From Penicillus capitatus (lineage: Eukaryota > Plantae > Chlorophyta): a DNA stretch of 64,000 bases. Both the position numbers and the translations under genes were made by a program. This document shows, in pieces, positions 34,181 to 64,000 of this stretch. The notes beneath the pieces were generated by a model, which saw only the letters and a program-made list of their open reading frames with translations, was not told the DNA's origin and ran no database searches. The stretch is from assembly GCA_965649825.1 (NCBI GenBank), contig OZ287703.1:1204740-1268739 (forward strand). The letters are read 5' to 3'. Position 1 is the first letter of the stretch, and every line of letters begins with the position of its first letter.

Positions 34181-34220
34181 CGAACATCCGGATCGGGACA
34201 AGACAAGTGCCGATCCGCCT

Positions 34221-34863: not shown

Positions 34864-35045
34864 TAAACGACTGGACTCAGACTAGGCTTTCTAGAGAGAC
34901 ATCGATCCGGAGATGCCTCGATGTAACACAGAAAAGAGATTGGCCGTGTCTTGATTCGTCTTCTGTTCTTTATTTGCTGCGTTTCTCTCTTTTTGAATCT
35001 GTTGAAACGGCGTTTTGTTGTCTCCACTGTTCACCACCGAGTCTA

Positions 35046-35573: not shown

Positions 35574-37383
35574 TTCAGAGAGCTAGAAATGGTGCCGCCA
35601 CAGCGTCTTTATAGCCGTGGCAGTGGCGGCACTACAACGCGTCGAATGCCGACCACGCCGTAGCTTAGTCATCCCGCCTTGATCCGTTCGACGGATCAGG
35701 ATGAGCGAACGAATCAAGGCGAAAGCAAACGATAATCGCGCGGAACATTGACCTCACACACATTGTGACAATACTCGATTATTCGAATGACCGAGGTTCT
35801 AATTTTATCCACGTCCACAGAAATAGTACGCATAACAAGTATATTAATCAGTTCTTTTGCGAGATGCCCGTAGTTTGACGTCGTTTCTCTGAAGCTGATT
35901 CCCGAGATGTCTCTAACAACAGCAAAAATTATCAACCATTTGTCAGGATGTATTTTGCAAGCTAGACCTTCGCAATGGGTTCCATCGGGTGCCGCTGGAA
36001 GCGGCCATGGGAAATGTCTTCGCCTTTGGGACCCGACGGCGTTTTTTCCGTTACAAGGTTTTGCCCCAAGGGTGGTCAGCGAGCCCTCACCTTTTTCATG
36101 CGATCGTCATGGAGATCTGCGCGGGGCACCCTGTCCTGCATTACATTGACGATCTGGTCATAGGGGCGCGGACACTGAAAGAACTCGAGGGACGTGTGTC
36201 CGCCCTATTGAGGACCCTAGAACATTATGGGCTCCAAGTACAGAAGAGCAAATTCGTATTTGGTCGGCGGGAGATAACATTCCTGGGGCTAGAGTTGATT
36301 CATTTGTTGAGTTCATGAGCACGTGGGGGTAAGGGGGGTAAAATGTTCAAAATTAAACGCGACAGCGTATTGAAACAGTGTATTTTAAACGTTTTTGTAA
36401 ACATCAGAAATCTTCATTCGTCATATTTATGCGAACATGACGTTGCTTGGCTCGTTCGTCCGTGCTCCATGACACTCACTGTCTCGGGTCACATAAATTG
36501 CAGAGTTCTATGACAATCTGAAACGTAAGCAAACAATAATCGCGCGGAACATTGACCTCACACACATTGTGACAATACTCGATTATTCTGTGACTGTGTG
36601 TTTCGAGGCTGTGTGTGACCGTCTTGATGCTGTAGCCACGTTCGTGTACCCAGTACGTCAACAGTTGACGCAGTTCCGCGCTTTTTTGGAGGTCCGTCGC
36701 CAGTTCGGTCTTTGCGGGCTCACAAATCCGCCCGTTGCTAGTCTTCTTCAAATCTACAACCGAACTCCGCGACATTTCAGAGAGCTAGAAATGGTGCCGC
36801 CACAGCGTCTTTATAGCCGTGGCAGTGGCGGCACTACAACGCGTCGAATGCCGACCACGCCGTAGCTTAGTCATCCCGCCTTGATCCGTTCGACGGATCA
36901 GGATGAGCGAACGAATCAAGGCGAAAGCAAACGATAATCGCGCGGAACATTGACCTCACACACATTGTGACAATACTCGATTATTCTGTGACTGTGTGTT
37001 TCGAGGCTGTGTGTGACCGTCTTGATGCTGTAGCCACGTTCGTGTACCCAGTACGTCAACAGTTGACGCAGTTCCGCGCTTTTTTGGAGGTCCGTCGCCA
37101 GTTCGGTCTTTGCGGGCTCACAAATCCGCCCGTTGCTAGTCTTCTTCAAATCTACAACCGAACTCCGCGACATTTCAGAGAGCTAGAAATGGTGCCGCCA
37201 CAGCGTCTTTATAGCCGTGGCAGTGGCGGCACTACAACGCGTCGAATGCCGACCACGCCGTAGCTTAGTCATCCCGCCTTGATCCGTTCGACGGATCAGG
37301 ATGAGCGAACGAATCAAGGCGAAAGCAAACAATAATCGCGCGGAACATTGACCTCACACACATTGTGACAATACTCGATTATT
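35386..37383. repeat. 398-bp unit (345-bp orphan-gene promoter/exon 1 plus 53-bp hairpin): copies at 35386-35783, 36588-36985 and 36986-37383
   Basis: Essentially identical sequence; spacing 36588 to 36986 = 398; the unit is bounded by the direct repeat CGATTATTC (35378-35386 and 35776-35784). Confidence 0.95.
35608..35613 (-). promoter_or_regulatory. TATA box of the orphan gene; duplicated in each 398-bp repeat copy
   Basis: TATAAA on the minus strand just upstream of the ATG at 35573. Confidence 0.45.

Positions 37384-40244: not shown

Positions 40245-40249
<5 letters not shown>
38729..40249 (+). mobile_element. Ty3/gypsy pol fragment (partial RT, RNase H, partial integrase), truncated at both ends; family distinct from the element at 44353
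   Basis: FCKLDLRNGFHRVP, YKVLPQGWSASP, HYIDD, ITFLG; RNase H FTDWS..GELRG..CCDN..VADFLSR; integrase H..H/C..C, FGDFLGP, VDGFSRY, ADRGAAF, cut before the catalytic Glu. No gag, PR or LTR. Confidence 0.93.
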
Positions 40250-41592
<1,343 letters not shown>

Positions 41593-44352: not shown

Positions 44353-44534
44353 TGTGATACTCGAATTCAGAAACAAAGCAAGCAAACAGAGTGTGTTACA
44401 AAATACGAATCGTGTTTCTCGAACATCGTATTTATACTACTCAGCATGACGTTATGATGTCGTCATGCCTCTTGTAATGATGTGACTGATGTTTCTTCCT
44501 TTCCTCTTCCCGCTTCATCTTCAGATCCACGACA
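44353..44534 (-). repeat. 3' LTR (182 bp)
   Basis: TGTGATACTC..CCACGACA, identical by eye to 49071-49252; minus-strand TATAAATA at 44429-44437; hairpins AAATACGA/TCGTATTT and GCATGACG/CGTCATGC. Confidence 0.97.
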
Positions 44535-47324: not shown

Positions 47325-49042
47325 TCGCGGACCGTGTAATCCACTCCCATTTGCGCCGGCACTTCAAAGATCGTGGTTTTTCCGGTTATGCGGATCGGCT
47401 CCTTGCGATGATTCGTGAGTGTCAGCGTGGAGAAATTCTCGTACTGCACACCGAGATGGACTGAAAAATGTGGTGCAACAATAGGTGTCCTCTTGTGCGT
47501 CATCGACCTCGGGAGGACAATTGGCGTCTTGATCATCCTGCTCTCTGCCGGTCCGAGTACCACCGATCGGTTGAGCGGGATCTGGATCCTGTCTCCTTTG
47601 ACCCCTGGTAGATGGGTCACCTTTTCCGTGATTCTGCCCACCTCTTCGTGGATTATCTCATTGACCGCGTCCTTGTCAGCTTTGGGCCCCGCGAAGAGGC
47701 ACCTGACGTTCCGTCCTCGAATGCAGATCGAACGATTATGCGGGTGTGCCGAGATTTGGTTCTCAGCCATCGCATCGATTCCCAACAGCAGATCGTATCC
47801 TGGCTTCGGCAGCACCAGGCAATTCAAGTGAAAACCCTGGTTCGTCGATTTTTCGACGGCAACGTCCACTCCGCATCTGCCTGTGACCTTCGCCGTCTCT
47901 CCGTGAGCGAGCAGGAGTCGCGTCCCATCCGGCTTGACTTCCAGTCCAAGTTCCTTCGCTAAAGCAAGGGACATGATTGAGGATTCGGCCCCTGTATCGA
48001 CGAGCGCCTCTATCCTCCTCGGGTATCCGAGATGGCTTTGGGCCACCAGTCCCAGCTTCATGACTCGTCGGTTCTCTTTCTTTCCCGTTGCCTTGGCCAT
48101 ACAGGCGAAAGAGGTATCTTCTCCCATTATCTCCTCCTCTCCTTCGCTGAGCGTCTCGCATACATGCTCCCCGCTTCCTTCTGGTATCGCATTCTCCACT
48201 ACAAACGCACGACGTCCTCCCCATCTCCTTTGCTGCGTCGTCGGTCTGCGATTCCCTGCCGGCCCATCTCCTCCGTTTAGTATCTTTTGGAGGAATCGCA
48301 TCATATTTTGGGCTTCCCGGCGCGAGGTCTTGCAAATTTCGCGTGCCCCGACCATGACTCTTCCGGCGTTCGTAATCGCCGTGAAATTGATTGCTCCGTT
48401 TTGTCCTATGACTCGCCCATCAGTCGCGACGTTGGCCTGCACGACGCCCATGTCGATTTCCATCAGGTCCTCGTCTGTCTCCGCCTTCTGGGAGGTAGCA
48501 CTCGATTCCCAGAAACTTGCGTTTCTTAGGACGGTGCTCATATCTGCCACGGTTGCCGTGGCTGGCAGAGGTAACATGAGCTTCCTGAGGTTGTTCGGCA
48601 ACCTGCGGTATAGCGTCTTCACTTGCGTCTCTCTGGACGCTGCCGATCCCACGCACGTCGCCATGTAGCGGTCGACGAATTCCAGCCATGTTTCCCCCTT
48701 CGTCTTCGTCATCCGCCCTAGCTTTTCTTCCGCGGATAGCGTCGAGGCTGGGCATGCCCCGAGCGTGAGCTCCTTCACAACTCTCCACTTGTCTGCGGCT
48801 TCGACGTGTCCCAGGTTCGCGCCGAAAAAGGCGTGAACTGTTGCTGCCGCCCCTGCGAAAGCCGCATTGAAGGCGGCGAGTCCACTGAAGTGTGGCTCGA
48901 CACGCTCAAGGACCTGGCGTATGAGGTCGAAGGCTGGCGACCTAGGCTCGAGCCTTTGAACCAGGTACTTGACGCGAGGACGGTAGTCGTCCTCGACGAA
49001 AGCTGCAGCGTTGAGAAGGGACGCGAACTCGTCGCGGTCCAT
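47264..49042 (-). CDS. gag: Gag - aspartic protease - possible dUTPase-like domain
   Basis: Helical capsid-like region without a CCHC knuckle; IEALVDTGAESSIMS and YDLLLGIDAM protease motifs. ATG at 49042; an upstream ATG at 49069 overlaps the PBS. Confidence 0.88.
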   Translation of the reverse strand: MDRDEFASLLNAAAFVEDDYRPRVKYLVQRLEPRSPAFDLIRQVLERVEPHFSGLAAFNAAFAGAAATVHAFFGANLGHVEAADKWRVVKELTLGACPASTLSAEEKLGRMTKTKGETWLEFVDRYMATCVGSAASRETQVKTLYRRLPNNLRKLMLPLPATATVADMSTVLRNASFWESSATSQKAETDEDLMEIDMGVVQANVATDGRVIGQNGAINFTAITNAGRVMVGAREICKTSRREAQNMMRFLQKILNGGDGPAGNRRPTTQQRRWGGRRAFVVENAIPEGSGEHVCETLSEGEEEIMGEDTSFACMAKATGKKENRRVMKLGLVAQSHLGYPRRIEALVDTGAESSIMSLALAKELGLEVKPDGTRLLLAHGETAKVTGRCGVDVAVEKSTNQGFHLNCLVLPKPGYDLLLGIDAMAENQISAHPHNRSICIRGRNVRCLFAGPKADKDAVNEIIHEEVGRITEKVTHLPGVKGDRIQIPLNRSVVLGPAESRMIKTPIVLPRSMTHKRTPIVAPHFSVHLGVQYENFSTLTLTNHRKEPIRITGKTTIFEVPAQMGVDYTVRDCNGKQHQLRSTRRHFPTRQ

Positions 49043-49056
49043 TTTGGAAATACGCA

Positions 49057-49068
49057 GCTCCGAAACCA
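49057..49068 (-). promoter_or_regulatory. Primer-binding site, probably initiator tRNA-Met
   Basis: TGGTTTCGGAGC versus plant iMet PBS TGGTATCAGAGC (one mismatch, one G-U wobble), 2 nt from the LTR. Confidence 0.65.
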
Positions 49069-49070
49069 TT

Positions 49071-49252
49071 TGTGATACTCGAATTCAGAAACAAAGCAAG
49101 CAAACAGAGTGTGTTACAAAATACGAATCGTGTTTCTCGAACATCGTATTTATACTACTCAGCATGACGTTATGATGTCGTCATGCCTCTTGTAATGATG
49201 TGACTGATGTTTCTTCCTTTCCTCTTCCCGCTTCATCTTCAGATCCACGACA
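49071..49252 (-). repeat. 5' LTR (182 bp)
   Basis: Identical to 44353-44534; followed 2 nt later, on the minus strand, by the PBS. Confidence 0.97.
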
Positions 49253-52200
49253 GTATTGAAACAGTGTATTTTAAACGTTTTTGTAAACATCAGAAATCTT
49301 CATTCGTCATATTTATGCGAACATGACGTTGCTTGGCTCGTTCGTCCGTGCTCCATGACACTCACTGTCTCGGGTCACATAAATTGCAGAGTTCTATGAC
49401 AATCTGAAACGTAAGCAAACAATAATCGCGCGGAACATTGACCTCACACACATTGTGACAATACTCGATTATTCGAATGACCGAGGTTCTAATTTTATCC
49501 ACGTCCACAGAAATAGTACGCATAACAAGTATATTAATCAGTTCTTTTGCGAGATGCCCGTAGTTTGACGTCGTTTCTCTGAAGCTGATTCCCGAGATGT
49601 CTCTAACAACAGCAAAAATTATCAACCATTTGTCAGGATGTATTTTGCAAGCTAGACCTTCGCAATGGGTTCCATCGGGTGCCGCTGGAAGCGGCCATGG
49701 GAAATGTCTTCACCTTTGGGATCCGACGGCGTTTTTTCCGTTACAAGGTTTTGCCCCAAGGGTGGTCAGCGAGCCCTCACCTGTTGAGTTCATGAGCACG
49801 TGGGGGTAAGGGGGGTAAAATGTTCAAAATTAAACGCGACAGCGTATTGAAACAGTGTATTTTAAACGTTTTTGTAAACATCAGAAATCTTCATTCGTCA
49901 TATTTATGCGAACATGACGTTGCTTGGCTCGTTCGTCCGTGCTCCATGACACTCACTGTCTCGGGTCACATAAATTGCAGAGTTCTATGACAATCTGAAA
50001 CGTAAGCAAACAATAATCGCGCGGAACATTGACCTCACACACATTGTGACAATACTCGATTATTCGAATGACCGAGGTTCTAATTTTATCCACGTCCACA
50101 GAAATAGTACGCATAACAAGTATATTAATCAGTTCTTTTGCGAGATGCCCGTAGTTTGACGTCGTTTCTCTGAAGCTGATTCCCGAGATGTCTCTAACAA
50201 CGGCAAAAATTATCAACCATTTGTCAGGATGTATTTTGCAAGCTAGACCTTCGCAATGGGTTCCATCGGGTGCCGCTGGAAGCGGCCATGGGAAATGTCT
50301 TCGCCTTTGGGATCCGACGGCGTTTTTTCCGTTACAAGGTTTTGCCCCAAGGGTGGTCAGCGAGCCCTCACCTGTTGAGTTCATGAGCACGTGGGGGTAA
50401 GGGGGGTAAAATGTTCAAAATTAAACGCGACAGCGTATTGAAACAGTGTATTTTAAACGTTTTTGTAAACATCAGAAATCTTCATTCGTCATATTTATGC
50501 GAACATGACGTTGCTTGGCTCGTTCGTCCGTGCTCCATGACACTCACTGTCTCGGGTCACATAAATTGCAGAGTTCTATGACAATCTGAAACGTAAGCAA
50601 ACAATAATCGCGCGGAACATTGACCTCACACACATTGTGACAATACTCGATTATTCGAATGACCGAGGTTCTAATTTTATCCACGTCCACAGAAATAGTA
50701 CGCATAACAAGTATATTAATCAGTTCTTTTGCGAGATGCCCGTAGTTTGACGTCGTTTCTCTGAAGCTGATTCCCGAGATGTCTCTAACAACGGCAAAAA
50801 TTATCAACCATTTGTCAGGATGTATTTTGCAAGCTAGACCTTCGCAATGGGTTCCATCGGGTGCCGCTGGAAGCGGCCATGGGAAATGTCTTCGCCTTTG
50901 GGATCCGACGGCGTTTTTTCCGTTACAAGGTTTTGCCCCAAGGGTGGTCAGCGAGCCCTCACCTGTTGAGTTCATGAGCACGTGGGGGTAAGGGGGGTAA
51001 AATGTTCAAAATTAAACGCGACAGCGTATTGAAACAGTGTATTTTAAACGTTTTTGTAAACATCAGAAATCTTCATTCGTCATATTTATGCGAACATGAC
51101 GTTGCTTGGCTCGTTCGTCCGTGCTCCATGACACTCACTGTCTCGGGTCACATAAATTGCAGAGTTCTATGACAATCTGAAACGTAAGCAAACAATAATC
51201 GCGCGGAACATTGACCTCACACACATTGTGACAATACTCGATTATTCGAATGACCGAGGTTCTAATTTTATCCACGTCCACAGAAATAGTACGCATAACA
51301 AGTATATTAATCAGTTCTTTTGCGAGATGCCCGTAGTTTGACGTCGTTTCTCTGAAGCTGATTCCCGAGATGTCTCTAACAACGGCAAAAATTATCAACC
51401 ATTTGTCAGGATGTATTTTGCAAGCTAGACCTTCGCAATGGGTTCCATCGGGTGCCGCTGGAAGCGGCCATGGGAAATGTCTTCGCCTTTGGGATCCGAC
51501 GGCGTTTTTTCCGTTACAAGGTTTTGCCCCAAGGGTGGTCAGCGAGCCCTCACCTGTTGAGTTCATGAGCACGTGGGGGTAAGGGGGGTAAAATGTTCAA
51601 AATTAAACGCGACAGCGTATTGAAACAGTGTATTTTAAACGTTTTTGTAAACATCAGAAATCTTCATTCGTCATATTTATGCGAACATGACGTTGCTTGG
51701 CTCGTTCGTCCGTGCTCCATGACACTCACTGTCTCGGGTCACATAAATTGCAGAGTTCTATGACAATCTGAAACGTAAGCAAACAATAATCGCGCGGAAC
51801 ATTGACCTCACACACATTGTGACAATACTCGATTATTCGAATGACCGAGGTTCTAATTTTATCCACGTCCACAGAAATAGTACGCATAACAAGTATATTA
51901 ATCAGTTCTTTTGCGAGATGCCCGTAGTTTGACGTCGTTTCTCTGAAGCTGATTCCCGAGATGTCTCTAACAACGGCAAAAATTATCAACCATTTGTCAG
52001 GATGTATTTTGCAAGCTAGACCTTCGCAATGGGTTCCATCGGGTGCCGCTGGAAGCGGCCATGGGAAATGTCTTCGCCTTTGGGATCCGACGGCGTTTTT
52101 TCCGTTACAAGGTTTTGCCCCAAGGGTGGTCAGCGAGCCCTCACCTGTTGAGTTCATGAGCACGTGGGGGTAAGGGGGGTAAAATGTTCAAAATTAAACG

Positions 52201-55200
52201 CGACAGCGTATTGAAACAGTGTATTTTAAACGTTTTTGTAAACATCAGAAATCTTCATTCGTCATATTTATGCGAACATGACGTTGCTTGGCTCGTTCGT
52301 CCGTGCTCCATGACACTCACTGTCTCGGGTCACATAAATTGCAGAGTTCTATGACAATCTGAAACGTAAGCAAACAATAATCGCGCGGAACATTGACCTC
52401 ACACACATTGTGACAATACTCGATTATTCGAATGACCGAGGTTCTAATTTTATCCACGTCCACAGAAATAGTACGCATAACAAGTATATTAATCAGTTCT
52501 TTTGCGAGATGCCCGTAGTTTGACGTCGTTTCTCTGAAGCTGATTCCCGAGATGTCTCTAACAACGGCAAAAATTATCAACCATTTGTCAGGATGTATTT
52601 TGCAAGCTAGACCTTCGCAATGGGTTCCATCGGGTGCCGCAGGAAGCGGCCATGGGAAATGTCTTCGCCTTTGGGATCCGACGGCGTTTTTTCCGTTACA
52701 AGGTTTTGCCCCAAGGGTGGTCAGCGAGCCCTCACCTGTTGAGTTCATGAGCACGTGGGGGTAAGGGGGGTAAAATGTTCAAAATTAAACGCGACAGCGT
52801 ATTGAAACAGTGTATTTTAAACGTTTTTGTAAACATCAGAAATCTTCATTCGTCATATTTATGCGAACATGACGTTGCTTGGCTCGTTCGTCCGTGCTCC
52901 ATGACACTCACTGTCTCGGGTCACATAAATTGCAGAGTTCTATGACAATCTGAAACGTAAGCAAACAATAATCGCGCGGAACATTGACCTCACACACATT
53001 GTGACAATACTCGATTATTCGAATGACCGAGGTTCTAATTTTATCCACGTCCACAGAAATAGTACGCATAACAAGTATATTAATCAGTTCTTTTGCGAGA
53101 TGCCCGTAGTTTGACGTCGTTTCTCTGAAGCTGATTCCCGAGATGTCTCTAACAACGGCAAAAATTATCAACCATTTGTCAGGATGTATTTTGCAAGCTA
53201 GACCTTCGCAATGGGTTCCATCGGGTGCCGCTGGAAGCGGCCATGGGAAATGTCTTCGCCTTTGGGATCCGACGGCGTTTTTTCCGTTACAAGGTTTTGC
53301 CCCAAGGGTGGTCAGCGAGCCCTCACCTGTTGAGTTCATGAGCACGTGGGGGTAAGGGGGGTAAAATGTTCAAAATTAAACGCGACAGCGTATTGAAACA
53401 GTGTATTTTAAACGTTTTTGTAAACATCAGAAATCTTCATTCGTCATATTTATGCGAACATGACGTTGCTTGGCTCGTTCGTCCGTGCTCCATGACACTC
53501 ACTGTCTCGGGTCACATAAATTGCAGAGTTCTATGACAATCTGAAACGTAAGCAAACAATAATCGCGCGGAACATTGACCTCACACACATTGTGACAATA
53601 CTCGATTATTCGAATGACCGAGGTTCTAATTTTATCCACGTCCACAGAAATAGTACGCATAACAAGTATATTAATCAGTTCTTTTGCGAGATGCCCGTAG
53701 TTTGACGTCGTTTCTCTGAAGCTGATTCCCGAGATGTCTCTAACAACGGCAAAAATTATCAACCATTTGTCAGGATGTATTTTGCAAGCTAGACCTTCGC
53801 AATGGGTTCCATCGGGTGCCGCTGGAAGCGGCCATGGGAAATGTCTTCGCCTTTGGGATCCGACGGCGTTTTTTCCGTTACAAGGTTTTGCCCCAAGGGT
53901 GGTCAGCGAGCCCTCACCTGTTGAGTTCATGAGCACGTGGGGGTAAGGGGGGTAAAATGTTCAAAATTAAACGCGACAGCGTATTGAAACAGTGTATTTT
54001 AAACGTTTTTGTAAACATCAGAAATCTTCATTCGTCATATTTATGCGAACATGACGTTGCTTGGCTCGTTCGTCCGTGCTCCATGACACTCACTGTCTCG
54101 GGTCACATAAATTGCAGAGTTCTATGACAATCTGAAACGTAAGCAAACAATAATCGCGCGGAACATTGACCTCACACACATTGTGACAATACTCGATTAT
54201 TCGAATGACCGAGGTTCTAATTTTATCCACGTCCACAGAAATAGTACGCATAACAAGTATATTAATCAGTTCTTTTGCGAGATGCCCGTAGTTTGACGTC
54301 GTTTCTCTGAAGCTGATTCCCGAGATGTCTCTAACAACGGCAAAAATTATCAACCATTTGTCAGGATGTATTTTGCAAGCTAGACCTTCGCAATGGGTTC
54401 CATCGGGTGCCGCTGGAAGCGGCCATGGGAAATGTCTTCGCCTTTGGGATCCGACGGCGTTTTTTCCGTTACAAGGTTTTGCCCCAAGGGTGGTCAGCGA
54501 GCCCTCACCTGTTGAGTTCATGAGCACGTGGGGGTAAGGGGGGTAAAATGTTCAAAATTAAACGCGACAGCGTATTGAAACAGTGTATTTTAAACGTTTT
54601 TGTAAACATCAGAAATCTTCATTCGTCATATTTATGCGAACATGACGTTGCTTGGCTCGTTCGTCCGTGCTCCATGACACTCACTGTCTCGGGTCACATA
54701 AATTGCAGAGTTCTATGACAATCTGAAACGTAAGCAAACAATAATCGCGCGGAACATTGACCTCACACACATTGTGACAATACTCGATTATTCGAATGAC
54801 CGAGGTTCTAATTTTATCCACGTCCACAGAAATAGTACGCATAACAAGTATATTAATCAGTTCTTTTGCGAGATGCCCGTAGTTTGACGTCGTTTCTCTG
54901 AAGCTGATTCCCGAGATGTCTCTAACAACGGCAAAAATTATCAACCATTTGTCAGGATGTATTTTGCAAGCTAGACCTTCGCAATGGGTTCCATCGGGTG
55001 CCGCTGGAAGCGGCCATGGGAAATGTCTTCGCCTTTGGGATCCGACGGCGTTTTTTCCGTTACAAGGTTTTGCCCCAAGGGTGGTCAGCGAGCCCTCACC
55101 TGTTGAGTTCATGAGCACGTGGGGGTAAGGGGGGTAAAATGTTCAAAATTAAACGCGACAGCGTATTGAAACAGTGTATTTTAAACGTTTTTGTAAACAT

Positions 55201-55710
55201 CAGAAATCTTCATTCGTCATATTTATGCGAACATGACGTTGCTTGGCTCGTTCGTCCGTGCTCCATGACACTCACTGTCTCGGGTCACATAAATTGCAGA
55301 GTTCTATGACAATCTGAAACGTAAGCAAACAATAATCGCGCGGAACATTGACCTCACACACATTGTGACAATACTCGATTATTCGAATGACCGAGGTTCT
55401 AATTTTATCCACGTCCACAGAAATAGTACGCATAACAAGTATATTAATCAGTTCTTTTGCGAGATGCCCGTAGTTTGACGTCGTTTCTCTGAAGCTGATT
55501 CCCGAGATGTCTCTAACAACGGCAAAAATTATCAACCATTTGTCAGGATGTATTTTACAAGCTAGACCTTCGCAATGGGTTCCATCGGGTGCCGCTGGAA
55601 GCGGCCATGGGAAATGTCTTCGCCTTTGGGATCAGACGGCGTTTTTTCCGTTACAAGGTTTTGCCCCAAGGGTGGTCAGCGAGCCCTCACCTGTTGAGTT
55701 CATGAGCACG
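49253..55710. repeat. 591-bp tandem macrosatellite, about 10.9 near-identical copies; the first unit begins at about 44335, left of the retrotransposon
   Basis: Hairpin module at 49421 + n x 591 up to 55331 (11 copies); only scattered SNPs. Confidence 0.98.
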
Positions 55711-58700
55711 TTCTATATTGGATGTAGAGGATGTTCGAAGTGGAGGATCGAAGAAATTGGAAGCTAACCGCCGGGGCCTGAAGTTGATTTACCCTTTTGA
55801 GTTCACGAGCACGTTACTACATGGGGGTAAGCCGTCCTAATCCAACATAGAGGATGTTCGAAGAGGAGGATCGAAGATATTGGAAGCTAACCGCCGGGGC
55901 CTGAAGTTGATTTACCCTTTTGAGTTCATGAGCACGTTCTATATTGGATGTAGAGGATATTCGAAGTGGAGGATCGAAGAAATTGGAAGCTAACCGCCGG
56001 GGCCTGAAGTTGATTTACCCTTTTGAGTTCACGAGCACGTTCTATATTGGATGTAGAGGATATTCGAAGTGGAGGATCGAAGAAATTGGAAGCTAACCGC
56101 CGGGGCCTGAAGTTGATTTACCCTTTTGAGTTCACGAGCACGTTCTATATTGGATGTAGAGGATATTCGAAGTGGAGGATCGAAGAAATTGGAAGCTAAC
56201 CGCCGGGGCCTGAAGTTGATTTACCCTTTTGAGTTCACGAGCACGTTACTACATGGGGGTAAGCCGTCCTAATCCAACATAGAGGATGTTCGAAGAGGAG
56301 GATCGAAGATATTGGAAGCTAACCGCCGGGGCCTGAAGTTGATTTACCCTTTTGAGTTCATGAGCACGTTCTATATTGGATGTAGAGGATGTTCGAAGTG
56401 GAGGATCGAAGAAATTGGAAGCTAACCGCCGGGGCCTGAAGTTGATTTACCCTTTTGAGTTCACGAGCACGTTACTACATGGGGGTAAGCCGTCCTAATC
56501 CAACATAGAGGATGTTCGAAGAGGAGGATCGAAGATATTGGAAGCTAACCGCCGGGGCCTGAAGTTGATTTACCCTTTTGAGTTCATGAGCACGTTCTAT
56601 ATTGGATGTAGAGGATGTTCGAAGTGGAGGATCGAAGAAATTGGAAGCTAACCGCCGGGGCCTGAAGTTGATTTACCCTTTTGAGTTCACGAGCACGTTA
56701 CTACATGGGGGTAAGCCGTCCTAATCCAACATAGAGGATGTTCGAAGAGGAGGATCGAAGATATTGGAAGCTAACCGCCGGGGCCTGAAGTTGATTTACC
56801 CTTTTGAGTTCATGAGCACGTTCTATATTGGATGTAGAGGATATTCGAAGTGGAGGATCGAAGAAATTGGAAGCTAACCGCCGGGGCCTGAAGTTGATTT
56901 ACCCTTTTGAGTTCACGAGCACGTTACTACATGGGGGTAAGCCGTCCTAATCCAACATAGAGGATGTTCGAAGAGGAGGATCGAAGATATTGGAAGCTAA
57001 CCGCCGGGGCCTGAAGTTGATTTACCCTTTTGAGTTCATGAGCACGTTCTATATTGGATGTAGAGGATATTCGAAGTGGAGGATCGAAGAAATTGGAAGC
57101 TAACCGCCGGGGCCTGAAGTTGATTTACCCTTTTGAGTTCACGAGCACGTTACTACATGGGGGTAAGCCGTCCTAATCCAACATAGAGGATGTTCGAAGA
57201 GGAGGATCGAAGATATTGGAAGCTAACCGCCGGGGCCTGAAGTTGATTTACCCTTTTGAGTTCATGAGCACGTTCTATATTGGATGTAGAGGATATTCGA
57301 AGTGGAGGATCGAAGAAATTGGAAGCTAACCGCCGGGGCCTGAAGTTGATTTACCCTTTTGAGTTCACGAGCACGTTACTACATGGGGGTAAGCCGTCCT
57401 AATCCAACATAGAGGATGTTCGAAGAGGAGGATCGAAGATATTGGAAGCTAACCGCCGGGGCCTGAAGTTGATTTACCCTTTTGAGTTCATGAGCACGTT
57501 CTATATTGGATGTAGAGGATATTCGAAGTGGAGGATCGAAGAAATTGGAAGCTAACCGCCGGGGCCTGAAGTTGATTTACCCTTTTGAGTTCACGAGCAC
57601 GTTACTACATGGGGGTAAGCCGTCCTAATCCAACATAGAGGATGTTCGAAGAGGAGGATCGAAGATATTGGAAGCTAACCGCCGGGGCCTGAAGTTGATT
57701 TACCCTTTTGAGTTCATGAGCACGTTCTATATTGGATGTAGAGGATATTCGAAGTGGAGGATCGAAGAAATTGGAAGCTAACCGCCGGGGCCTGAAGTTG
57801 ATTTACCCTTTTGAGTTCACGAGCACGTTACTACATGGGGGTAAGCCGTCCTAATCCAACATAGAGGATGTTCGAAGAGGAGGATCGAAGATATTGGAAG
57901 CTAACCGCCGGGGCCTGAAGTTGATTTACCCTTTTGAGTTCATGAGCACGTTCTATATTGGATGTAGAGGATGTTCGAAGTGGAGGATCGAAGAAATTGG
58001 AAGCTAACCGCCGGGGCCTGAAGTTGATTTACCCTTTTGAGTTCACGAGCACGTTACTACATGGGGGTAAGCCGTCCTAATCCAACATAGAGGATGTTCG
58101 AAGAGGAGGATCGAAGATATTGGAAGCTAACCGCCGGGGCCTGAAGTTGATTTACCCTTTTGAGTTCATGAGCACGTTCTATATTGGATGTAGAGGATGT
58201 TCGAAGTGGAGGATCGAAGAAATTGGAAGCTAACCGCCGGGGCCTGAAGTTGATTTACCCTTTTGAGTTCACGAGCACGTTACTACATGGGGGTAAGCCG
58301 TCCTAATCCAACATAGAGGATGTTCGAAGAGGAGGATCGAAGATATTGGAAGCTAACCGCCGGGGCCTGAAGTTGATTTACCCTTTTGAGTTCATGAGCA
58401 CGTTCTATATTGGATGTAGAGGATATTCGAAGTGGAGGATCGAAGAAATTGGAAGCTAACCGCCGGGGCCTGAAGTTGATTTACCCTTTTGAGTTCACGA
58501 GCACGTTACTACATGGGGGTAAGCCGTCCTAATCCAACATAGAGGATGTTCGAAGAGGAGGATCGAAGATATTGGAAGCTAACCGCCGGGGCCTGAAGTT
58601 GATTTACCCTTTTGAGTTCATGAGCACGTTCTATATTGGATGTAGAGGATGTTCGAAGTGGAGGATCGAAGAAATTGGAAGCTAACCGCCGGGGCCTGAA

Positions 58701-61700
58701 GTTGATTTACCCTTTTGAGTTCACGAGCACGTTACTACATGGGGGTAAGCCGTCCTAATCCAACATAGAGGATGTTCGAAGAGGAGGATCGAAGATATTG
58801 GAAGCTAACCGCCGGGGCCTGAAGTTGATTTACCCTTTTGAGTTCATGAGCACGTTCTATATTGGATGTAGAGGATATTCGAAGTGGAGGATCGAAGAAA
58901 TTGGAAGCTAACCGCCGGGGCCTGAAGTTGATTTACCCTTTTGAGTTCACGAGCACGTTACTACATGGGGGTAAGCCGTCCTAATCCAACATAGAGGATG
59001 TTCGAAGAGGAGGATCGAAGATATTGGAAGCTAACCGCCGGGGCCTGAAGTTGATTTACCCTTTTGAGTTCATGAGCACGTTCTATATTGGATGTAGAGG
59101 ATATTCGAAGTGGAGGATCGAAGAAATTGGAAGCTAACCGCCGGGGCCTGAAGTTGATTTACCCTTTTGAGTTCACGAGCACGTTACTACATGGGGGTAA
59201 GCCGTCCTAATCCAACATAGAGGATGTTCGAAGAGGAGGATCGAAGATATTGGAAGCTAACCGCCGGGGCCTGAAGTTGATTTACCCTTTTGAGTTCATG
59301 AGCACGTTCTATATTGGATGTAGAGGATATTCGAAGTGGAGGATCGAAGAAATTGGAAGCTAACCGCCGGGGCCTGAAGTTGATTTACCCTTTTGAGTTC
59401 ACGAGCACGTTACTACATGGGGGTAAGCCGTCCTAATCCAACATAGAGGATGTTCGAAGAGGAGGATCGAAGATATTGGAAGCTAACCGCCGGGGCCTGA
59501 AGTTGATTTACCCTTTTGAGTTCATGAGCACGTTCTATATTGGATGTAGAGGATATTCGAAGTGGAGGATCGAAGAAATTGGAAGCTAACCGCCGGGGCC
59601 TGAAGTTGATTTACCCTTTTGAGTTCACGAGCACGTTACTACATGGGGGTAAGCCGTCCTAATCCAACATAGAGGATGTTCGAAGAGGAGGATCGAAGAT
59701 ATTGGAAGCTAACCGCCGGGGCCTGAAGTTGATTTACCCTTTTGAGTTCATGAGCACGTTCTATATTGGATGTAGAGGATATTCGAAGTGGAGGATCGAA
59801 GAAATTGGAAGCTAACCGCCGGGGCCTGAAGTTGATTTACCCTTTTGAGTTCACGAGCACGTTACTACATGGGGGTAAGCCGTCCTAATCCAACATAGAG
59901 GATGTTCGAAGAGGAGGATCGAAGATATTGGAAGCTAACCGCCGGGGCCTGAAGTTGATTTACCCTTTTGAGTTCATGAGCACGTTCTATATTGGATGTA
60001 GAGGATGTTCGAAGTGGAGGATCGAAGAAATTGGAAGCTAACCGCCGGGGCCTGAAGTTGATTTACCCTTTTGAGTTCACGAGCACGTTACTACATGGGG
60101 GTAAGCCGTCCTAATCCAACATAGAGGATGTTCGAAGAGGAGGATCGAAGATATTGGAAGCTAACCGCCGGGGCCTGAAGTTGATTTACCCTTTTGAGTT
60201 CATGAGCACGTTCTATATTGGATGTAGAGGATGTTCGAAGTGGAGGATCGAAGAAATTGGAAGCTAACCGCCGGGGCCTGAAGTTGATTTACCCTTTTGA
60301 GTTCACGAGCACGTTACTACATGGGGGTAAGCCGTCCTAATCCAACATAGAGGATGTTCGAAGAGGAGGATCGAAGATATTGGAAGCTAACCGCCGGGGC
60401 CTGAAGTTGATTTACCCTTTTGAGTTCATGAGCACGTTCTATATTGGATGTAGAGGATATTCGAAGTGGAGGATCGAAGAAATTGGAAGCTAACCGCCGG
60501 GGCCTGAAGTTGATTTACCCTTTTGAGTTCACGAGCACGTTACTACATGGGGGTAAGCCGTCCTAATCCAACATAGAGGATGTTCGAAGAGGAGGATCGA
60601 AGATATTGGAAGCTAACCGCCGGGGCCTGAAGTTGATTTACCCTTTTGAGTTCATGAGCACGTTCTATATTGGATGTAGAGGATGTTCGAAGTGGAGGAT
60701 CGAAGAAATTGGAAGCTAACCGCCGGGGCCTGAAGTTGATTTACCCTTTTGAGTTCACGAGCACGTTACTACATGGGGGTAAGCCGTCCTAATCCAACAT
60801 AGAGGATGTTCGAAGAGGAGGATCGAAGATATTGGAAGCTAACCGCCGGGGCCTGAAGTTGATTTACCCTTTTGAGTTCATGAGCACGTTCTATATTGGA
60901 TGTAGAGGATATTCGAAGTGGAGGATCGAAGAAATTGGAAGCTAACCGCCGGGGCCTGAAGTTGATTTACCCTTTTGAGTTCACGAGCACGTTACTACAT
61001 GGGGGTAAGCCGTCCTAATCCAACATAGAGGATGTTCGAAGAGGAGGATCGAAGAAATTGGAAGCTAACCGCCGGGGCCTGAAGTTGATTTACCCTTTTG
61101 AGTTCATGAGCACGTTCTATATTGGATGTAGAGGATATTCGAAGTGGAGGATCGAAGAAATTGGAAGCTAACCGCCGGGGCCTGAAGTTGATTTACCCTT
61201 TTGAGTTCACGAGCACGTTACTACATGGGGGTAAGCCGTCCTAATCCAACATAGAGGATGTTCGAAGAGGAGGATCGAAGATATTGGAAGCTAACCGCCG
61301 GGGCCTGAAGTTGATTTACCCTTTTGAGTTCATGAGCACGTTCTATATTGGATGTAGAGGATATTCGAAGTGGAGGATCGAAGAAATTGGAAGCTAACCG
61401 CCGGGGCCTGAAGTTGATTTACCCTTTTGAGTTCACGAGCACGTTACTACATGGGGGTAAGCCGTCCTAATCCAACATAGAGGATGTTCGAAGAGGAGGA
61501 TCGAAGATATTGGAAGCTAACCGCCGGGGCCTGAAGTTGATTTACCCTTTTGAGTTCATGAGCACGTTCTATATTGGATGTAGAGGATATTCGAAGTGGA
61601 GGATCGAAGAAATTGGAAGCTAACCGCCGGGGCCTGAAGTTGATTTACCCTTTTGAGTTCACGAGCACGTTACTACATGGGGGTAAGCCGTCCTAATCCA

Positions 61701-62655
61701 ACATAGAGGATGTTCGAAGAGGAGGATCGAAGATATTGGAAGCTAACCGCCGGGGCCTGAAGTTGATTTACCCTTTTGAGTTCATGAGCACGTTCTATAT
61801 TGGATGTAGAGGATATTCGAAGTGGAGGATCGAAGAAATTGGAAGCTAACCGCCGGGGCCTGAAGTTGATTTACCCTTTTGAGTTCACGAGCACGTTACT
61901 ACATGGGGGTAAGCCGTCCTAATCCAACATAGAGGATGTTCGAAGAGGAGGATCGAAGATATTGGAAGCTAACCGCCGGGGCCTGAAGTTGATTTACCCT
62001 TTTGAGTTCATGAGCACGTTCTATATTGGATGTAGAGGATATTCGAAGTGGAGGATCGAAGAAATTGGAAGCTAACCGCCGGGGCCTGAAGTTGATTTAC
62101 CCTTTTGAGTTCACGAGCACGTTACTACATGGGGGTAAGCCGTCCTAATCCAACATAGAGGATGTTCGAAGAGGAGGATCGAAGATATTGGAAGCTAACC
62201 GCCGGGGCCTGAAGTTGATTTACCCTTTTGAGTTCATGAGCACGTTCTATATTGGATGTAGAGGATATTCGAAGTGGAGGATCGAAGAAATTGGAAGCTA
62301 ACCGCCGGGGCCTGAAGTTGATTTACCCTTTTGAGTTCACGAGCACGTTACTACATGGGGGTAAGCCGTCCTAATCCAACATAGAGGATGTTCGAAGAGG
62401 AGGATCGAAGATATTGGAAGCTAACCGCCGGGGCCTGAAGTTGATTTACCCTTTTGAGTTCATGAGCACGTTCTATATTGGATGTAGAGGATATTCGAAG
62501 TGGAGGATCGAAGAAATTGGAAGCTAACCGCCGGGGCCTGAAGTTGATTTACCCTTTTGAGTTCACGAGCACGTTACTACATGGGGGTAAGCCGTCCTAA
62601 TCCAACATAGAGGATGTTCGAAGAGGAGGATCGAAGATATTGGAAGCTAACCGCC
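55693..62655. repeat. Satellite family AB: 103-bp (A) and 123-bp (B) monomers, mostly a 226-bp AB dimer (about 32 A and 30 B)
   Basis: A starts at 55713, 55939, 56042, then 56145 + n x 226 to 62473. Shared body GAGGAT(G/A)TTCGAAG..TAACCGCCGGGGCCTGAAGTTGATTTACCCTTTTGAGTTCA(C/T)GAGCACGTT. Confidence 0.98.
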
Positions 62656-64000
62656 AGGCCCTGAAGTTGATTTACCCTTACATGTTCAAGAGCACGTTCT
62701 ATGTAAGGTATCGAGGATGTTCAAAACGGAGAACACAGGATATTGGATGCTAACCGCCAGGCCCTGAAGTTGATTTACCCTTACATGTTCAAGAGCACGT
62801 GGTAAATGGGATGTAGAGGATGTTCAAAACGGAGAACAGAGGATATTGGATGCTAACCGCCAGGCCCTGAAGTTGATTTACCCTTACATGTTCAAGAGCA
62901 CGTTCTATGTAAGGTATCGAGGATGTTCAAATCGGAGAACACAGGATATTGGATGCTAACCGCCAGGCCCTGAAGTTGATTTACCCTTACATGTTCAAGA
63001 GCACGTGGTAAATGGGATGTAGAGGATGTTCAAAACGGAGAACAGAGGATATTGGATGCTAACCGCCAGGCCCTGAAGTTGATTTACCCTTACATGTTCA
63101 AGAGCACGTTCTATGTAAGGTATCGAGGATGTTCAAAACGGAGAACACAGGATATTGGAGGCTAACCGCCAGGCCCTGAAGTTGATTTACCCTTACATGT
63201 TCAAGAGCACGTTCTATGTAAGGTATCGAGGATGTTCAAAACGGAGAACACAGGATATTGGAGGCTAACCGCCAGGCCCTGAAGTTGATTTACCCTTACA
63301 TGTTCAAGAGCACGTGGTAAATGGGATGTAGAGGATGTTCAAAACGGAGAACAGAGGATATTGGATGCTAACCGCCAGGCCCTGAAGTTGATTTACCCTT
63401 ACATGTTCAAGAGCACGTGGTAAATGGGATGTAGAGGATGTTCAAAACGGAGAACAGAGGATATTGGATGCTAACCGCCAGGCCCTGAAGTTGATTTACC
63501 CTTACATGTTCAAGAGCACGTTCTATGTAAGGTATCGAGGATGTTCAAAACGGAGAACACAGGATATTGGATGCTAACCGCCAGGCCCTGAAGTTGATTT
63601 ACCCTTACATGTTCAAGAGCACGTGGTAAATGGGATGTAGAGGATGTTCAAAACGGAGAACAGAGGATATTGGATGCTAACCGCCAGGCCCTGAAGTTGA
63701 TTTACCCTTACATGTTCAAGAGCACGTTCTATGTAAGGTATCGAGGATGTTCAAAACGGAGAACACAGGATATTGGAGGCTAACCGCCAGGCCCTGAAGT
63801 TGATTTACCCTTACATGTTCAAGAGCACGTGGTAAATGGGATGTAGAGGATGTTCAAAACGGAGAACAGAGGATATTGGATGCTAACCGCCAGGCCCTGA
63901 AGTTGATTTACCCTTACATGTTCAAGAGCACGTTCTATGTAAGGTATCGAGGATGTTCAAAACGGAGAACACAGGATATTGGATGCTAACCGCCAGGCCC
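62656..64000. repeat. Satellite family CD: two 103-bp variants in irregular order (C,D,C,D,C,C,D,D,C,D,C,D,C), continuing off the window
   Basis: Body TAACCGCCAGGCCCTGAAGTTGATTTACCCTTACATGTTCAAGAGCACGT, 103-bp period; collinear with AB but clearly diverged. Confidence 0.98.

Follow-up and report, generated by a model that had tools for sequence, protein, structure and literature searches.

The last part of a 64,000-nucleotide stretch of Penicillus capitatus DNA (the window) is occupied by a tandem satellite whose monomers differ in a short segment following the word GAGCACGT, which raises the question of how such segments arise. The original prediction described a constant body with a variable segment swapped in at a fixed junction and complementary to the repeat's own upstream motif, and proposed either recurrent breakage repaired by self-templated fold-back synthesis or selection for a folded structure. 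We analysed this one locus in one species. The observation was confirmed in part and its interpretation found partial support; the locus is probably an ordinary, young retroelement-derived satellite, in which clustered mutations were amplified as dimers by unequal crossing-over.

Arrays and variable segments

The predicted array and all five segment strings are present as written. GAGCACGT occurs 75 times from 55704 to the end of the window and 14 times upstream, 12 of these 14 copies being within 591-bp unit copies, in and upstream of the 591-bp array. Cutting at GAGCACGT between 55704 and 64000 gave 74 monomers that fall into four types: A, C and D measure 103 bp and B 123 bp. They make up two successive dimeric higher-order repeats, first A-B and then C-D, and the 591-bp repeat lies in register before them.

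49253..55703, + strand: 591-bp tandem repeat (U), 10.9 units, in register with the A/B array
55704..62689, + strand: A/B satellite array, 226-bp dimer (A 103 + B 123 bp), about 31 dimers, irregular start A B A A A B
62567..62689, + strand: hybrid monomer, of type B in its head and body as far as GCTAACCGCC and of type C/D in its tail, AGGCCC...CTTACATGTTCAA
62690..64000, + strand: C/D satellite array, 103-bp monomers, C and D mostly alternating, continuing past the window end

Ten U(591) units (49794-55703) come first; the A/B array opens with A B A A A B and goes on as (A B)n up to 62689, and the monomers from there to 64000 read C D C D C C D D C D C D C. Tandem Repeats Finder (TRF) reported a period of 226 (29.9 copies, 99% matches), compared with only 77% for a period of 103, and a secondary period of 2,034 bp was found within the A/B array. 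The 591-bp unit starts with GAGCACGT GGGGGTAAGGGGGGTAAA ATGTTCAAAA and ends with TTGAGTTCAT. All three arrays join in register, U to A at 55704 and A/B to C/D at the hybrid (62567); this last monomer of the A/B array, part B and part C/D in type, is an in-register recombination junction between the two arrays. No open reading frame longer than 58 aa was found in the satellite.

55712..55726, + strand: segment A, first copy, TCTATATTGGATGTA, holding ATATTGGATG, an exact direct copy of a C/D-body sub-repeat
55815..55849, + strand: segment B, first copy, 35 nt, CTACAT + 19-nt insert GGGGGTAAGCCGTCCTAAT + CCAACATAG
62698..62712, + strand: segment C, first copy, TCTATGTAAGGTATC, in which ATGTAAGG is the reverse complement of upstream CCTTACAT
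62801..62815, + strand: segment D, first copy, GGTAAATGGGATGTA, in which GGTAAAT is the reverse complement of ATTTACC

In the 591-bp unit the corresponding piece is GGGGGTAAGGGGGGTAAA, preceding ATGTTC. Between GAGCACGT and ATGTTC the spacing is conserved, at 18 nt in the retroelement parent described below and 19 nt in A, C and D. The segments are related to each other, with identities over 19 nt of 13/19 (A-C), 15/19 (A-D) and 10/19 (C-D), and A differs from C at 6/15 and from D at 4/15 positions. A matches C in its 5' five bases and D in its 3' part, so that it reads as a clean 5'-C/3'-D intermediate. A fixed junction was not borne out: the five bases TCTAT after GAGCACGT are common to A and C, and the last 7 segment bases (GGATGTA) to A and D. 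At the junction, a perfect CACGTG is read in D and in the 591-bp unit, and CACGTT in A, B and C. The match of segment A to the C/D-body sub-repeat is exact over 10 nt (p=0.0006). As predicted, ATCCAACATAG in B is an inverted copy of CTATATTGGAT in A with one mismatch; read along the sequence, the inversion extends to 14/15 of CTATATTGGATGTAG (A's 15-mer), is interrupted by the 19-nt insert, which is found in B alone, and inverts the discriminating positions in 5/5 cases. This in-place inversion is probably the footprint of a template-switch or quasi-palindrome event.

The original prediction also likened the array to a repeat-spacer or swap-in system. The array shares with CRISPR-like arrays a constant part alternating with a differing part. 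Unlike them, it lies in a eukaryotic genome, its 74 monomers contain only four segment types, each confined to one higher-order repeat and present 6-32 times in a fixed order, and its 'spacers' show relationships among themselves as well as with the repeat body; the likeness was not upheld. The 'constant body' held within each dimer, where the two monomers are 96-99% identical outside the segment, but not between the A/B and C/D families, whose bodies differ by about 20% (17-18/88 positions). The differences between C and D number 9/15 in the segment against 1/88 in the body (Fisher p=1.9e-8), and the A and B bodies differ at 3-4 positions. Because within-dimer differences are so sharply clustered, uniform point-mutation drift does not explain them, in agreement with the original prediction. 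Between families, the segment was not significantly more variable than the body (A vs C, p=0.11; A vs D, p=0.50).

Retroelement parent of the monomer

36001..36318, + strand: truncated reverse-transcriptase (RT) fragment, the monomer 'parent', Pfam RVT_1, profile positions 95-205/205, ending ...ITFLGLELIHLLSS*
36317..36352, + strand: parent junction, GAGCACGT + GGGGGTAAGGGGGGTAAA (18 nt, at the variable-segment position) + ATGTTCAAAA
38782..39080, + strand: second RT copy, 99.7% identical to the first, running on into RNase H and integrase, not GAGCACGT

The RVT_1 match (E=1.5e-16) runs to the profile end at ...FLGLEL, and the last 31 coding bases of the fragment align with TGGAAGCTAACCGCCGGGGCCTGAAGTTGA of the satellite. 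Since the second copy is continuous from RT through RNase H to integrase (38782-40564), the 31 shared bases are genuine pol sequence. An anchored alignment of these bases with the satellite gave 21/30 identities (p<5e-5 for A/B, 5e-4 for C/D), and p values over the full 38 nt 5' of TTGAGTTCAT were 5e-5 and 1e-4. The parental 18-mer TTGAGTTCATGAGCACGT is exact at the B-A junction, and parental ATGTTCAAAA is exact in C/D, at 18 vs 19 nt from GAGCACGT. Positions 208-583 of the 591-bp unit are retroelement-derived and end in RT coding sequence. By these alignments, the ~103-bp monomer descends from a rearranged Ty3/gypsy-like retroelement and consists of the last ~31 RT coding bases, the fused TTGAGTTCAT GAGCACGT, an 18-19-nt stretch and ATGTTCAAAA; the 591-bp unit is, by the same evidence, a second, longer derivative of the same parent.

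Compared position by position, the 18 nt of the parent and the 19 nt of A, C and D showed no significant similarity (p=0.5-0.97), hence the homology of these segments to the parent rests on flanks and conserved length. B and C share words with the parental segment, the 9-mer GGGGGTAAG, located in the insert of B (p=0.0001), and GTAAGG in C (p=0.008). The satellite is 30-40% diverged from the parent, compared with the near-identity of the two RT copies, so that its source may be a related, older element.

Examples of LTR-retrotransposon-derived repeats are the potato centromeric satellites and, in maize, tandem repeats that stem from centromeric retrotransposons. As in satellites of this origin (reviewed in PMC9659126), a Ty3/gypsy-like piece has been tandemly amplified here, the array adjoins copies of the parent element, and derivative units of several lengths (591, 226 and 206 bp) lie side by side; unlike in those, the amplified piece is the 3' end of the RT coding sequence with a rearrangement junction, not LTR or UTR.

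Complementarity and folding

starts 55787, + strand: upstream motif, A/B form, ATTTACCCTTTTGAG
62670..62683, + strand: upstream motif, C/D form, ATTTACCCTTACAT, 13 copies

The upstream motif ATTTACCCTT occurs 74 times, in the satellite only. Four of the five variants had been predicted to pair back on it. The 591-bp unit has no ATTTACCCTT 5' of its own segment, where GAGCCCTCACCTGTTGAGTTCAT is found instead, so that at most three variants can pair in cis. When reverse complementarity to the upstream 30 nt was compared with shuffles, the predicted excess was observed for C (p=0.0014-0.004), was marginal for D (p=0.04-0.06), was not significant for B (p=0.09-0.3) and was absent for A (p=0.98) and for the 591-bp unit in cis. 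A composition-matched control without mechanistic meaning, complement without reversal, reached p<0.0002 with D, 0.016 with A and ~0.05 with B. Through its changed bases C has acquired the reverse complement of CCTTACAT over 8 nt (10/11 when a gap is allowed), and by this sequence comparison its complementarity to the upstream motif is real. Direct relations (of segments with the parent, with the body sub-repeat and with inverted A) equal or exceed the fold-back ones in strength, and matches of 7-8 nt fall in a range often due to chance in the template-switch literature (PMC5453318; PMC8604942). Partial complementarity to ATTTACCCTT is best read as a by-product, either of inheritance of the parent's G-rich word or of one or two template switches, and a selected hairpin or cassette mechanism behind it was set aside in favour of this reading.

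The proposal of a hairpin, cruciform or structured RNA under selection, in which the upstream motif pairs with the segment, is close to refuted, and we consider it highly improbable. Folding predicts 6-8-bp stems in B, C and D, but fold energies were no better than those of dinucleotide shuffles, both for junction windows folded as DNA (-0.7 to -8.8 kcal/mol, z -1.07 to +1.16) and for whole dimers folded as RNA (z +0.43 and +1.02). A has no such stem, the paired positions vary by variant so that no common structure is conserved, and the loops measure 17-30 nt, a length unfavourable for cruciform extrusion. An Rfam search of the satellite gave no match at E<=1.

Origin of the segment differences

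In the account that we favour, the monomer and the 591-bp unit would have arisen from a longer tandem unit through different internal deletions, the 'variable segment' being an 18-19-nt stretch whose parental form, GGGGGTAAGGGGGGTAAA, is G-rich. Each array would then have undergone one complex multi-base mutation within this stretch: for A/B, the in-place inversion of the 15-mer with a 19-20-nt insertion; for C/D, 9 clustered substitutions, divisible into two adjacent sub-clusters relative to an A-like intermediate. Co-amplification of the mutated monomer with an unmutated neighbour by unequal crossing-over would leave the two monomers of a dimer nearly identical elsewhere. The clusters most likely stem from replication errors acting over a short range, namely template switching at quasi-palindromes together with slippage or conversion between the ~13-nt GGAT-type sub-repeats that each monomer contains. 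As in template-switch mutations and quasi-palindrome correction, base changes are clustered in about 10-15 nt, and C gained a reverse-complement copy of nearby sequence; as in inverted-repeat spacer inversion, B is inverted in place between short inverted words (CTA...TAG). The differences are that copied stretches are 7-8 nt exact here (the cut-off for confident calls is 14 bp), that the arms are 3-6 nt (in yeast, spacer inversions were observed solely at arms >9 bp; PMC5453318, PMC8604942), and that the inversion in B is accompanied by the insertion.

For 2-3 complex events of independent origin to strike one ~19-nt stretch of the 103-nt monomer, the chance is about 2-15%, which leaves room for a true hot spot or selection. 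Site-specific recurrent templated mutagenesis would supply a hot spot: a nascent strand stalled or broken after GAGCACGT would copy the upstream ATTTACCCTT(ACAT) by fold-back, the segments would be fresh products, and every new higher-order repeat would start from an event of this kind. We regard this as unlikely, though the least improbable of the alternatives. The match of C to CCTTACAT, 17 nt upstream, includes the C/D-specific ACAT; the D match, the pairing of GGGTAA in B with TTACCC and the in-place inversion of A's 15-mer agree with it, as do the presence of the B, C and D pairings in minimum-energy folds, the confinement of every event to the same ~19 nt, and the known ability of template switching to make such clusters and spacer inversions (PMC5453318, PMC8604942). 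Given an A-like ancestral segment, the C and D clusters would both have gained complementarity to adjacent parts of one motif (p ~0.002 and 0.04), and templated synthesis would then fit better than random clusters. Evidence on polarity conflicts: the parent favours a G-rich ancestor, and the identity of the A segment with the C/D-body sub-repeat an A-like one. The matches are 6-8 nt, and matches below 12-13 bp are often fortuitous, 7-bp arms being significant in only ~20% of cases (PMC5453318, PMC8604942). The results for B and A, the lack of the motif in the 591-bp unit, the control without reversal and the small number of segment types also speak against recurrent templating; the words that B and C share with the parent mean that complementarity can be inherited from one ancestral relation. 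Nothing indicates a repeated break at GAGCACGT, contrary to the original prediction.

Selection could instead maintain a dimorphic box while the remainder of the monomer is homogenised, the two segments being candidate sites for different DNA-binding proteins. The monomers of two independent higher-order repeats indeed alternate regularly, a 15-35-nt box in a set position distinguishing them, with CACGTG or CACGTT at the junction, and there is a formal analogy with dimeric alpha satellite, in which A-type and B-type monomers carry a pJalpha motif or a CENP-B box of 17 bp (PMC4585704). The two satellites are unrelated in sequence, the CENP-B box core was searched for in this satellite and is absent, and monomers within a dimer are much closer here than the A and B types of alpha satellite. 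Runs of A A A, C C and D D break the alternation. In a relative with 87% identical flanking genes, an unrelated 329-bp satellite is found past a synteny break at ~32.8 kb, which suggests rapid satellite turnover between species; this relative, which has another satellite at the syntenic place, offers no conserved box in support, and we find this explanation improbable. There is comparably little to commend, even taken jointly, two explanations based on conversion. In one, the segments date from the family split and patchy homogenisation erased body differences, blocked by the heterologous segment; in the other, ectopic conversion imported the A-like segment of D from an A-like array. Segment divergence is similar in order to between-family body divergence, body variants are patchy (position 29 is G in B and in 9 copies of A and is A in the remaining 23; the B copy at 60985 has the GAAATT of A; position 46 has the A/B state in D, not C), and the hybrid at 62567 attests to in-register recombination between arrays. 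Against the former, monomers within known higher-order repeats diverge over their whole length, and a recent dimer origin is simpler for near-identical bodies; against the latter, D body positions 23-45 are purely C/D-type, so that a single conversion tract does not fit, and no donor array with the exact D segment was seen.

No described satellite with this sequence was found for green algae in or near Bryopsidales. In an independent P. capitatus assembly (ENA ERZ25074695 ctg340476), 99.6-100% identical, the start is again U to A B A A A B A B; in this second sample, 5 U units are present vs 10, and the A sub-variants occur in another order.

Monomer order and sequence of the variable segment

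The satellite consisted of 74 head-to-tail monomers of 103 or 123 bp (55704-64000), a long array of similar units that runs beyond the window end. Tandem Repeats Finder reported a single array (about 55848-63994, period 103, 77% matches) and a sub-array at 56054-62800 with a period of 226 (29.9 copies, 99% matches). The order of monomers A, C and D (103 bp each) and B (123 bp), and of the 591-bp tandem unit U that precedes them, was obtained by cutting the sequence at each GAGCACGT.

Order of units across the repeat zone
49794-55703: ten copies of the 591-bp unit U
up to 62689: A B A A A B, then regular A-B dimers
62567-62689: hybrid monomer, the last B copy, with the B head and body to GCTAACCGCC, then a C/D tail
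62690 to window end: C D C D C C D D C D C D C

The hybrid monomer indicates that the A/B and C/D arrays were joined in register, and the junction between the last U unit and the first A is likewise in register. Copies of the dimers were more alike than the monomers inside them, as judged from the 226- versus 103-bp periods and from the C-D alternation, which defines them as higher-order repeats. The G-rich top strand had a GC skew of +0.18 to +0.24. The original prediction had described a repeat-spacer-like pattern. Only four segment types were present among the 74 monomers, in set alternation, unlike the many different spacers between identical repeats of a CRISPR-like array; the repeat-spacer look is that of dimeric higher-order repeats whose monomers differ by one complex mutation each.

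The five variant strings quoted in that prediction were all found in the window. The monomer body, said to be constant, was so inside each dimer and not between the A/B and C/D families. C and D differed at 10 positions, and nine of these fell in the 15-nt segment behind GAGCACGT (Fisher p=1.9e-8); A and B differed in this segment (15 versus 35 nt) and at 3-4 body positions. Of the 88 body positions, 17-18 separated the A/B from the C/D family, grouped in blocks such as GATCGAAGAA against AACACAGGAT or TTGA against ACAT. Between families, no significant excess of variability was observed in the segment compared with the body (A-C 6/15, p=0.11; A-D 4/15, p=0.50). Nor did the proposed fixed junction exist, as TCTAT after GAGCACGT is common to A and C, and the final GGATGTA to A and D. 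Over the 19 nt to ATGTTC, identity was 13/19 for A-C, 15/19 for A-D and 10/19 for C-D, with A matching C in its 5' part and D in its 3' part. The segments are graded, related sequences of constant length rather than unrelated cassettes. As A, C and D are each exactly 15 nt long, an ancestral 24-mer obtained by overlapping C and D, and then shortened by deletions, was judged unparsimonious and rejected.

Complementarity, folding and complex mutations

Four of the five variants had been proposed to pair back on a conserved motif about 20 nt upstream of the segment. Each reverse-complemented segment was scored by alignment against the 30 nt preceding GAGCACGT, with 5,000 shuffles as the reference. 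The C segment matched significantly (CCTTACAT/ATGTAAGG, 8 nt exact, 10/11 with one gap; p=0.0014-0.004), and the D segment marginally (ATTTACC/GGTAAAT, 7 nt; p=0.04-0.06). The 6-nt reverse-complement match of the B segment was not significant (p=0.09-0.3), the A segment had no match to the upstream 30 nt beyond shuffles (p=0.98), and the 591-unit piece, which matched the C/D motif (p=0.007), did not match its own upstream sequence, where the motif is absent (p=0.94). The proposed pairing of four of the five variants does not hold. A first control, reversal without complementation, gave no match signal; it is not matched in composition, because the segments are purine-rich and the motif pyrimidine-rich. 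The composition-matched control, complementation without reversal, corresponds to no mechanism and gave values as strong as the reverse-complement matches (D p<0.0002, A 0.016, B about 0.05). The control match of D is in part the same 7-mer, since GGTAAATGG is identical read either way; the values of A and B show the background level.

Direct relations among segments, parent (the truncated reverse transcriptase fragment at 36001-36318 with its fused sequence) and body are as strong as the complementarity, or stronger. The ATATTGGATG of A is an exact copy of a sub-repeat of the C/D body (p=0.0006), B and the parent segment have GGGGGTAAG in common (p=0.0001), and C and the parent segment share GTAAGG, almost in register (p=0.008). 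The G-rich word of the parent is roughly the reverse complement of ATTTACCCTTAC, so that a single old relation, passed on by descent, can account for the pairing of B, C and D without its repeated creation. GGGTAA was also considered as a telomere-like sequence; by inspection it is not a TTTAGGG-type unit.

The D segment TAAATGGGATGTA (62801-62815) is also the unreversed complement of ATTTACCCT(T)ACAT (62773-62786), at 13 of 14 positions (p<0.0002). The mirror symmetry of GGTAAATGG and ATGTA accounts for only part of the match, and we know of no mechanism that produces unreversed-complement repeats.

The junction windows were folded as single-stranded DNA and gave -0.7 kcal/mol for A (z +1.16), -8.8 for B (z -1.07), -5.5 for C (z -0.94), -2.9 for D (z +0.70) and -3.9 for U (z +1.14). 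As RNA, the dimers folded no better than shuffles (A-B z=+0.43, C-D z=+1.02). The putative hairpins have loops of 17-30 nt and pairing partners that vary by variant, and a search of Rfam over 49-64 kb returned no match at E<=1, on which ground an origin from a tRNA or another structured RNA was also rejected. Selection for a hairpin, a cruciform or a structured RNA, one of the two explanations originally put forward, is unsupported by these z values and by Rfam.

B reads TA CTACAT [GGGGGTAAGCCGTCCTAAT] CCAACATAG AGG, and the CTATATTGGATGTAG of A has CTACATCCAATATAG as its reverse complement. The inverted copy of A predicted in B was confirmed, the reverse-complemented 15-mer being present at 14/15 with all five discriminating positions inverted; at one more position B is unlike both the 15-mer of A and its reverse complement. 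The inversion is interrupted by a 19-nt insertion that has no second occurrence within the window. Judged from sequence comparison, B appears to combine this insertion with an inversion in place, bounded by the short inverted words CTA and TAG. A template switch at a quasi-palindrome is expected to leave such a pattern, although the arms (CTA/TAG only, or a quasi-repeat of 6 nt) are shorter here than those on record. A template switch copying the upstream motif would fit the mutation cluster of C and, only weakly, that of D. The longest exact reverse-complement match is 8 nt, below the copied fragment of at least 14 bp used as a threshold against chance in work where template-switch matches shorter than 12-13 bp were often chance and a control of the same kind was applied (PMC5453318). 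For yeast, significance was reached by arms of 7 bp in about 20% of cases and by arms of 8 bp in 69% (PMC8604942). Furthermore, the 5' half of the monomer is made of GGAT-type sub-repeats of about 13 nt (ATATTGGATG TA / GAGGATRTTCGAAG / GGAGGATCGAAG / AWATTGGAAG); the segment is the first of them, which makes slippage or conversion among sub-repeats another ready source of change.

The original observation is thus borne out in part, and its interpretation has partial support. Of the fold-back, self-templated repair originally proposed, there remain a real clustering of changes and one or two events that resemble template switches, without the cassette-like array, the fixed junction and the hairpin. 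The distinguishing mutations of both dimers and the divergent stretch of the parent nevertheless all lie in the same 19 nt, and this coincidence leaves residual room for a hot spot or for a dimorphic box. The 19-nt stretch after GAGCACGT would in the first case be a hot spot of templated (fold-back or template-switch) mutagenesis, each event seeding a new higher-order repeat, which we regard as unlikely. If so, higher-order repeats here would owe their birth to template switching and not to point mutation; genome-wide confirmation would tie the origin of such repeats to short template switching, a link of interest for centromere and satellite evolution. In a weaker variant, to which we give a somewhat smaller chance again, the two boxes per dimer would be functional protein-recognition sites, as in alpha satellite. 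As in the A/B-box dimers of alpha satellite, alternating monomers are marked by a short box at a fixed place, but there is no CENP-B box core in the array.

Relation of the monomer to a reverse transcriptase fragment

The open frame of the parent (36001-36318) ends in ...YIDDLVIGARTLKELEGRVSALLRTLEHYGLQVQKSKFVFGRREITFLGLELIHLLSS* and matched Pfam RVT_1 (E=1.5e-16) to the last profile position, FLGLEL. The stop codon of this reverse transcriptase (RT) fragment overlaps a GAGCACGT, followed by GGGGGTAAGGGGGGTAAA ATGTTCAAAA. A second RT copy (38782-39080), 99.7% identical to the parent, runs on into RNase H and integrase, and the two copies diverge after ...GGGGCTAGAGTTGA.

Anchored comparisons of monomer and transposable element showed significant homology: 31 RT-coding bases compared with satellite TGGAAGCTAACCGCCGGGGCCTGAAGTTGA gave 21/30 matches (p<5e-5 for A/B, 5e-4 for C/D), and the 38 nt upstream of TTGAGTTCAT gave p=5e-5 and 1e-4. 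The TTGAGTTCATGAGCACGT of the parent is identical to the B-A junction, and its ATGTTCAAAA is identical in C/D, at a distance after GAGCACGT of 18 nt in the parent and 19 nt in A, C and D. Unanchored local alignment of the body alone to the parent was not significant (p=0.08-0.2), and the case for RT homology therefore depends on the anchored comparisons. Position-by-position homology of the parent's 18 nt to the A, C and D segments was not significant. The common bases are conserved RT coding sequence (FLGLEL), and RNase H and integrase follow in another copy, which favours descent of the satellite from a transposable element. As the satellite is 30-40% diverged from the parent, compared with the near-identity of the two RT copies, an older relative of the parent element may have been the actual source.

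The 591-bp unit carries the first 31 residues of the parent RT fragment at its 3' end and lacks the 209 bp at 36096-36304. The parent's TTGAGTTCAT is retained in A/B, its ATGTTCAAAA in C/D, and GG after GAGCACGT in D, which argues that both families come from a monomer nearer to the parent. A longer tandem unit formed from a rearranged Ty3/gypsy-like element would have given rise to the 591-bp unit and to the ~103-bp monomer as two deletion derivatives.

The parent form of the variable segment is GGGGGTAAGGGGGGTAAAA then TG (36325-36347, and in every 591-bp unit). It resembles a polypurine tract with the start of an LTR behind it, in which case the 591-bp array would be an LTR-internal-LTR tandem; the sole support for the LTR reading, an inverted match of 5 nt (TGTTC...GAACA) some 200 nt further downstream, does not amount to evidence. 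Upstream of the main array, 35374-39080 is a patchwork of partial 591-bp units. It includes a 398-bp repeat (36527-37384, 2.2 copies) made of 591-unit positions 208-272 and a 333-bp sequence, and two copies of the RT extension (36096-36304 and 38878-39080).

Variation of the locus and neighbouring sequences

A metagenome contig of the same species in ENA (ERZ25074695 ctg340476, 944,726 bp) was 99.6-100% identical to the window over 9-46 kb and terminates inside the A/B array. Its last 17 kb contain the same passage from U to A B A A A B A B as the window, with five U units against ten, and the order of A sub-variants differs further in. The presence of the array in this contig, with a changed U count and A order, indicates that it is no assembly artefact and is polymorphic. 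The changes in copy number and variant order that accompany unequal exchange were found in the U count, the A order, the hybrid monomer and a repeated 2,034-bp pattern.

The A sub-variants carry G or A at monomer position 29. At 57944-62011, the pattern g g a g a a a a a is seen twice, 2,034 bp (9 dimers) apart, indicating a recent 2-kb duplication inside the A/B array; the sub-variant pattern of the second sample differs from that of the window. A stretch of 118 bp (39082-39198), just past the RT copy at 38782-39080, is missing from the otherwise 99.8-100% identical second-sample contig.

A contig from a related alga (ERZ26696514 ctg303716) was 87% identical across genes, and synteny was lost at about 32.8 kb of the window. 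Beyond this point it carries an unrelated 329-bp satellite, and no 103-bp satellite was found in its syntenic region. Two exact-pattern scans of JGI metagenome contigs and a search of viral contigs gave no match to the 103-bp satellite; prokaryotic genomes gave one lone 20-mer in a bacterium, which equals chance expectation, and a literature search for the satellite sequence returned nothing relevant. Neither the 40-aa ORF of the satellite nor the 145-aa one in the 591-bp unit was present in called-protein records; a 143-aa version was recorded at this locus only.

The locus is best classed with an already known kind of satellite, namely one derived from a retroelement and organised in dimeric higher-order repeats; it is seen here at an early stage and in fast turnover. 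Its value is that of a clear, nearly undecayed example of satellite birth, in which a retrotransposon pol-gene fragment joined to foreign sequence adjoins three of its own tandem derivatives (591, 226 and 206 bp) in register. Turnover is seen in the copy numbers, which vary between two samples of one species, and in the wholly different satellite of a close relative at this place. Descriptions of satellites from siphonous green algae are, to our knowledge, few.

The 329-bp satellite of the related alga occupies L010:15731-20201 and L009:5-1924, two contigs ending within it, and its array switches orientation at about L010:16858-16875. A 54-bp relic of its unit is present in the window at 33393-33445. 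Between 9131 and 32823, about 24 kb of genes are collinear with L001/L010 of that alga at 85-87% DNA identity (longin SNARE, SIR2, SCO1, a BTB protein, oxidoreductases, a carotenoid-isomerase-like gene, a Ddi1-like protease, an M24 peptidase, an MA3-domain protein and a U-box protein), and synteny stops abruptly at the start of the repeats. The longin SNARE, BTB protein and pyridine-nucleotide oxidoreductase genes of the window are spliced. The best named homologue of the carotenoid-isomerase-like gene (18999-20780) was from Caulerpa lentillifera (62%), with other green algae and cyanobacteria next, and the U-box gene was 40% identical to Ostreobium quekettii proteins. The window is thus eukaryotic, and these homologues place its host among the green algae, probably within Bryopsidales or close to that order.

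A mobile element interrupts the repeats:
44353-49252, minus strand: LTR retrotransposon, two identical 182-bp LTRs (44353-44534 and 49071-49252), TG...CA

It carries a 601-aa gag-protease ORF, and its RT is only 32% identical to that of the satellite's parent. Its insertion site is position 51-54 in the first of the 591-like units, where 4 bp of target (GTAT) are duplicated; the insertion is also present in the second sample's contig, so that it is very young but shared. Directly before the repeat zone lies a 653-bp fragment of an MnmE/TrmE GTPase gene (34220-34872), which is 97% identical to a fragment at a contig end of the related alga (L009:3409-4061) and 86% identical to an apparently intact gene elsewhere (L007:9703-10548). 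These two relatives indicate that a piece of the gene has been duplicated and dispersed; a mobile element may have carried it.
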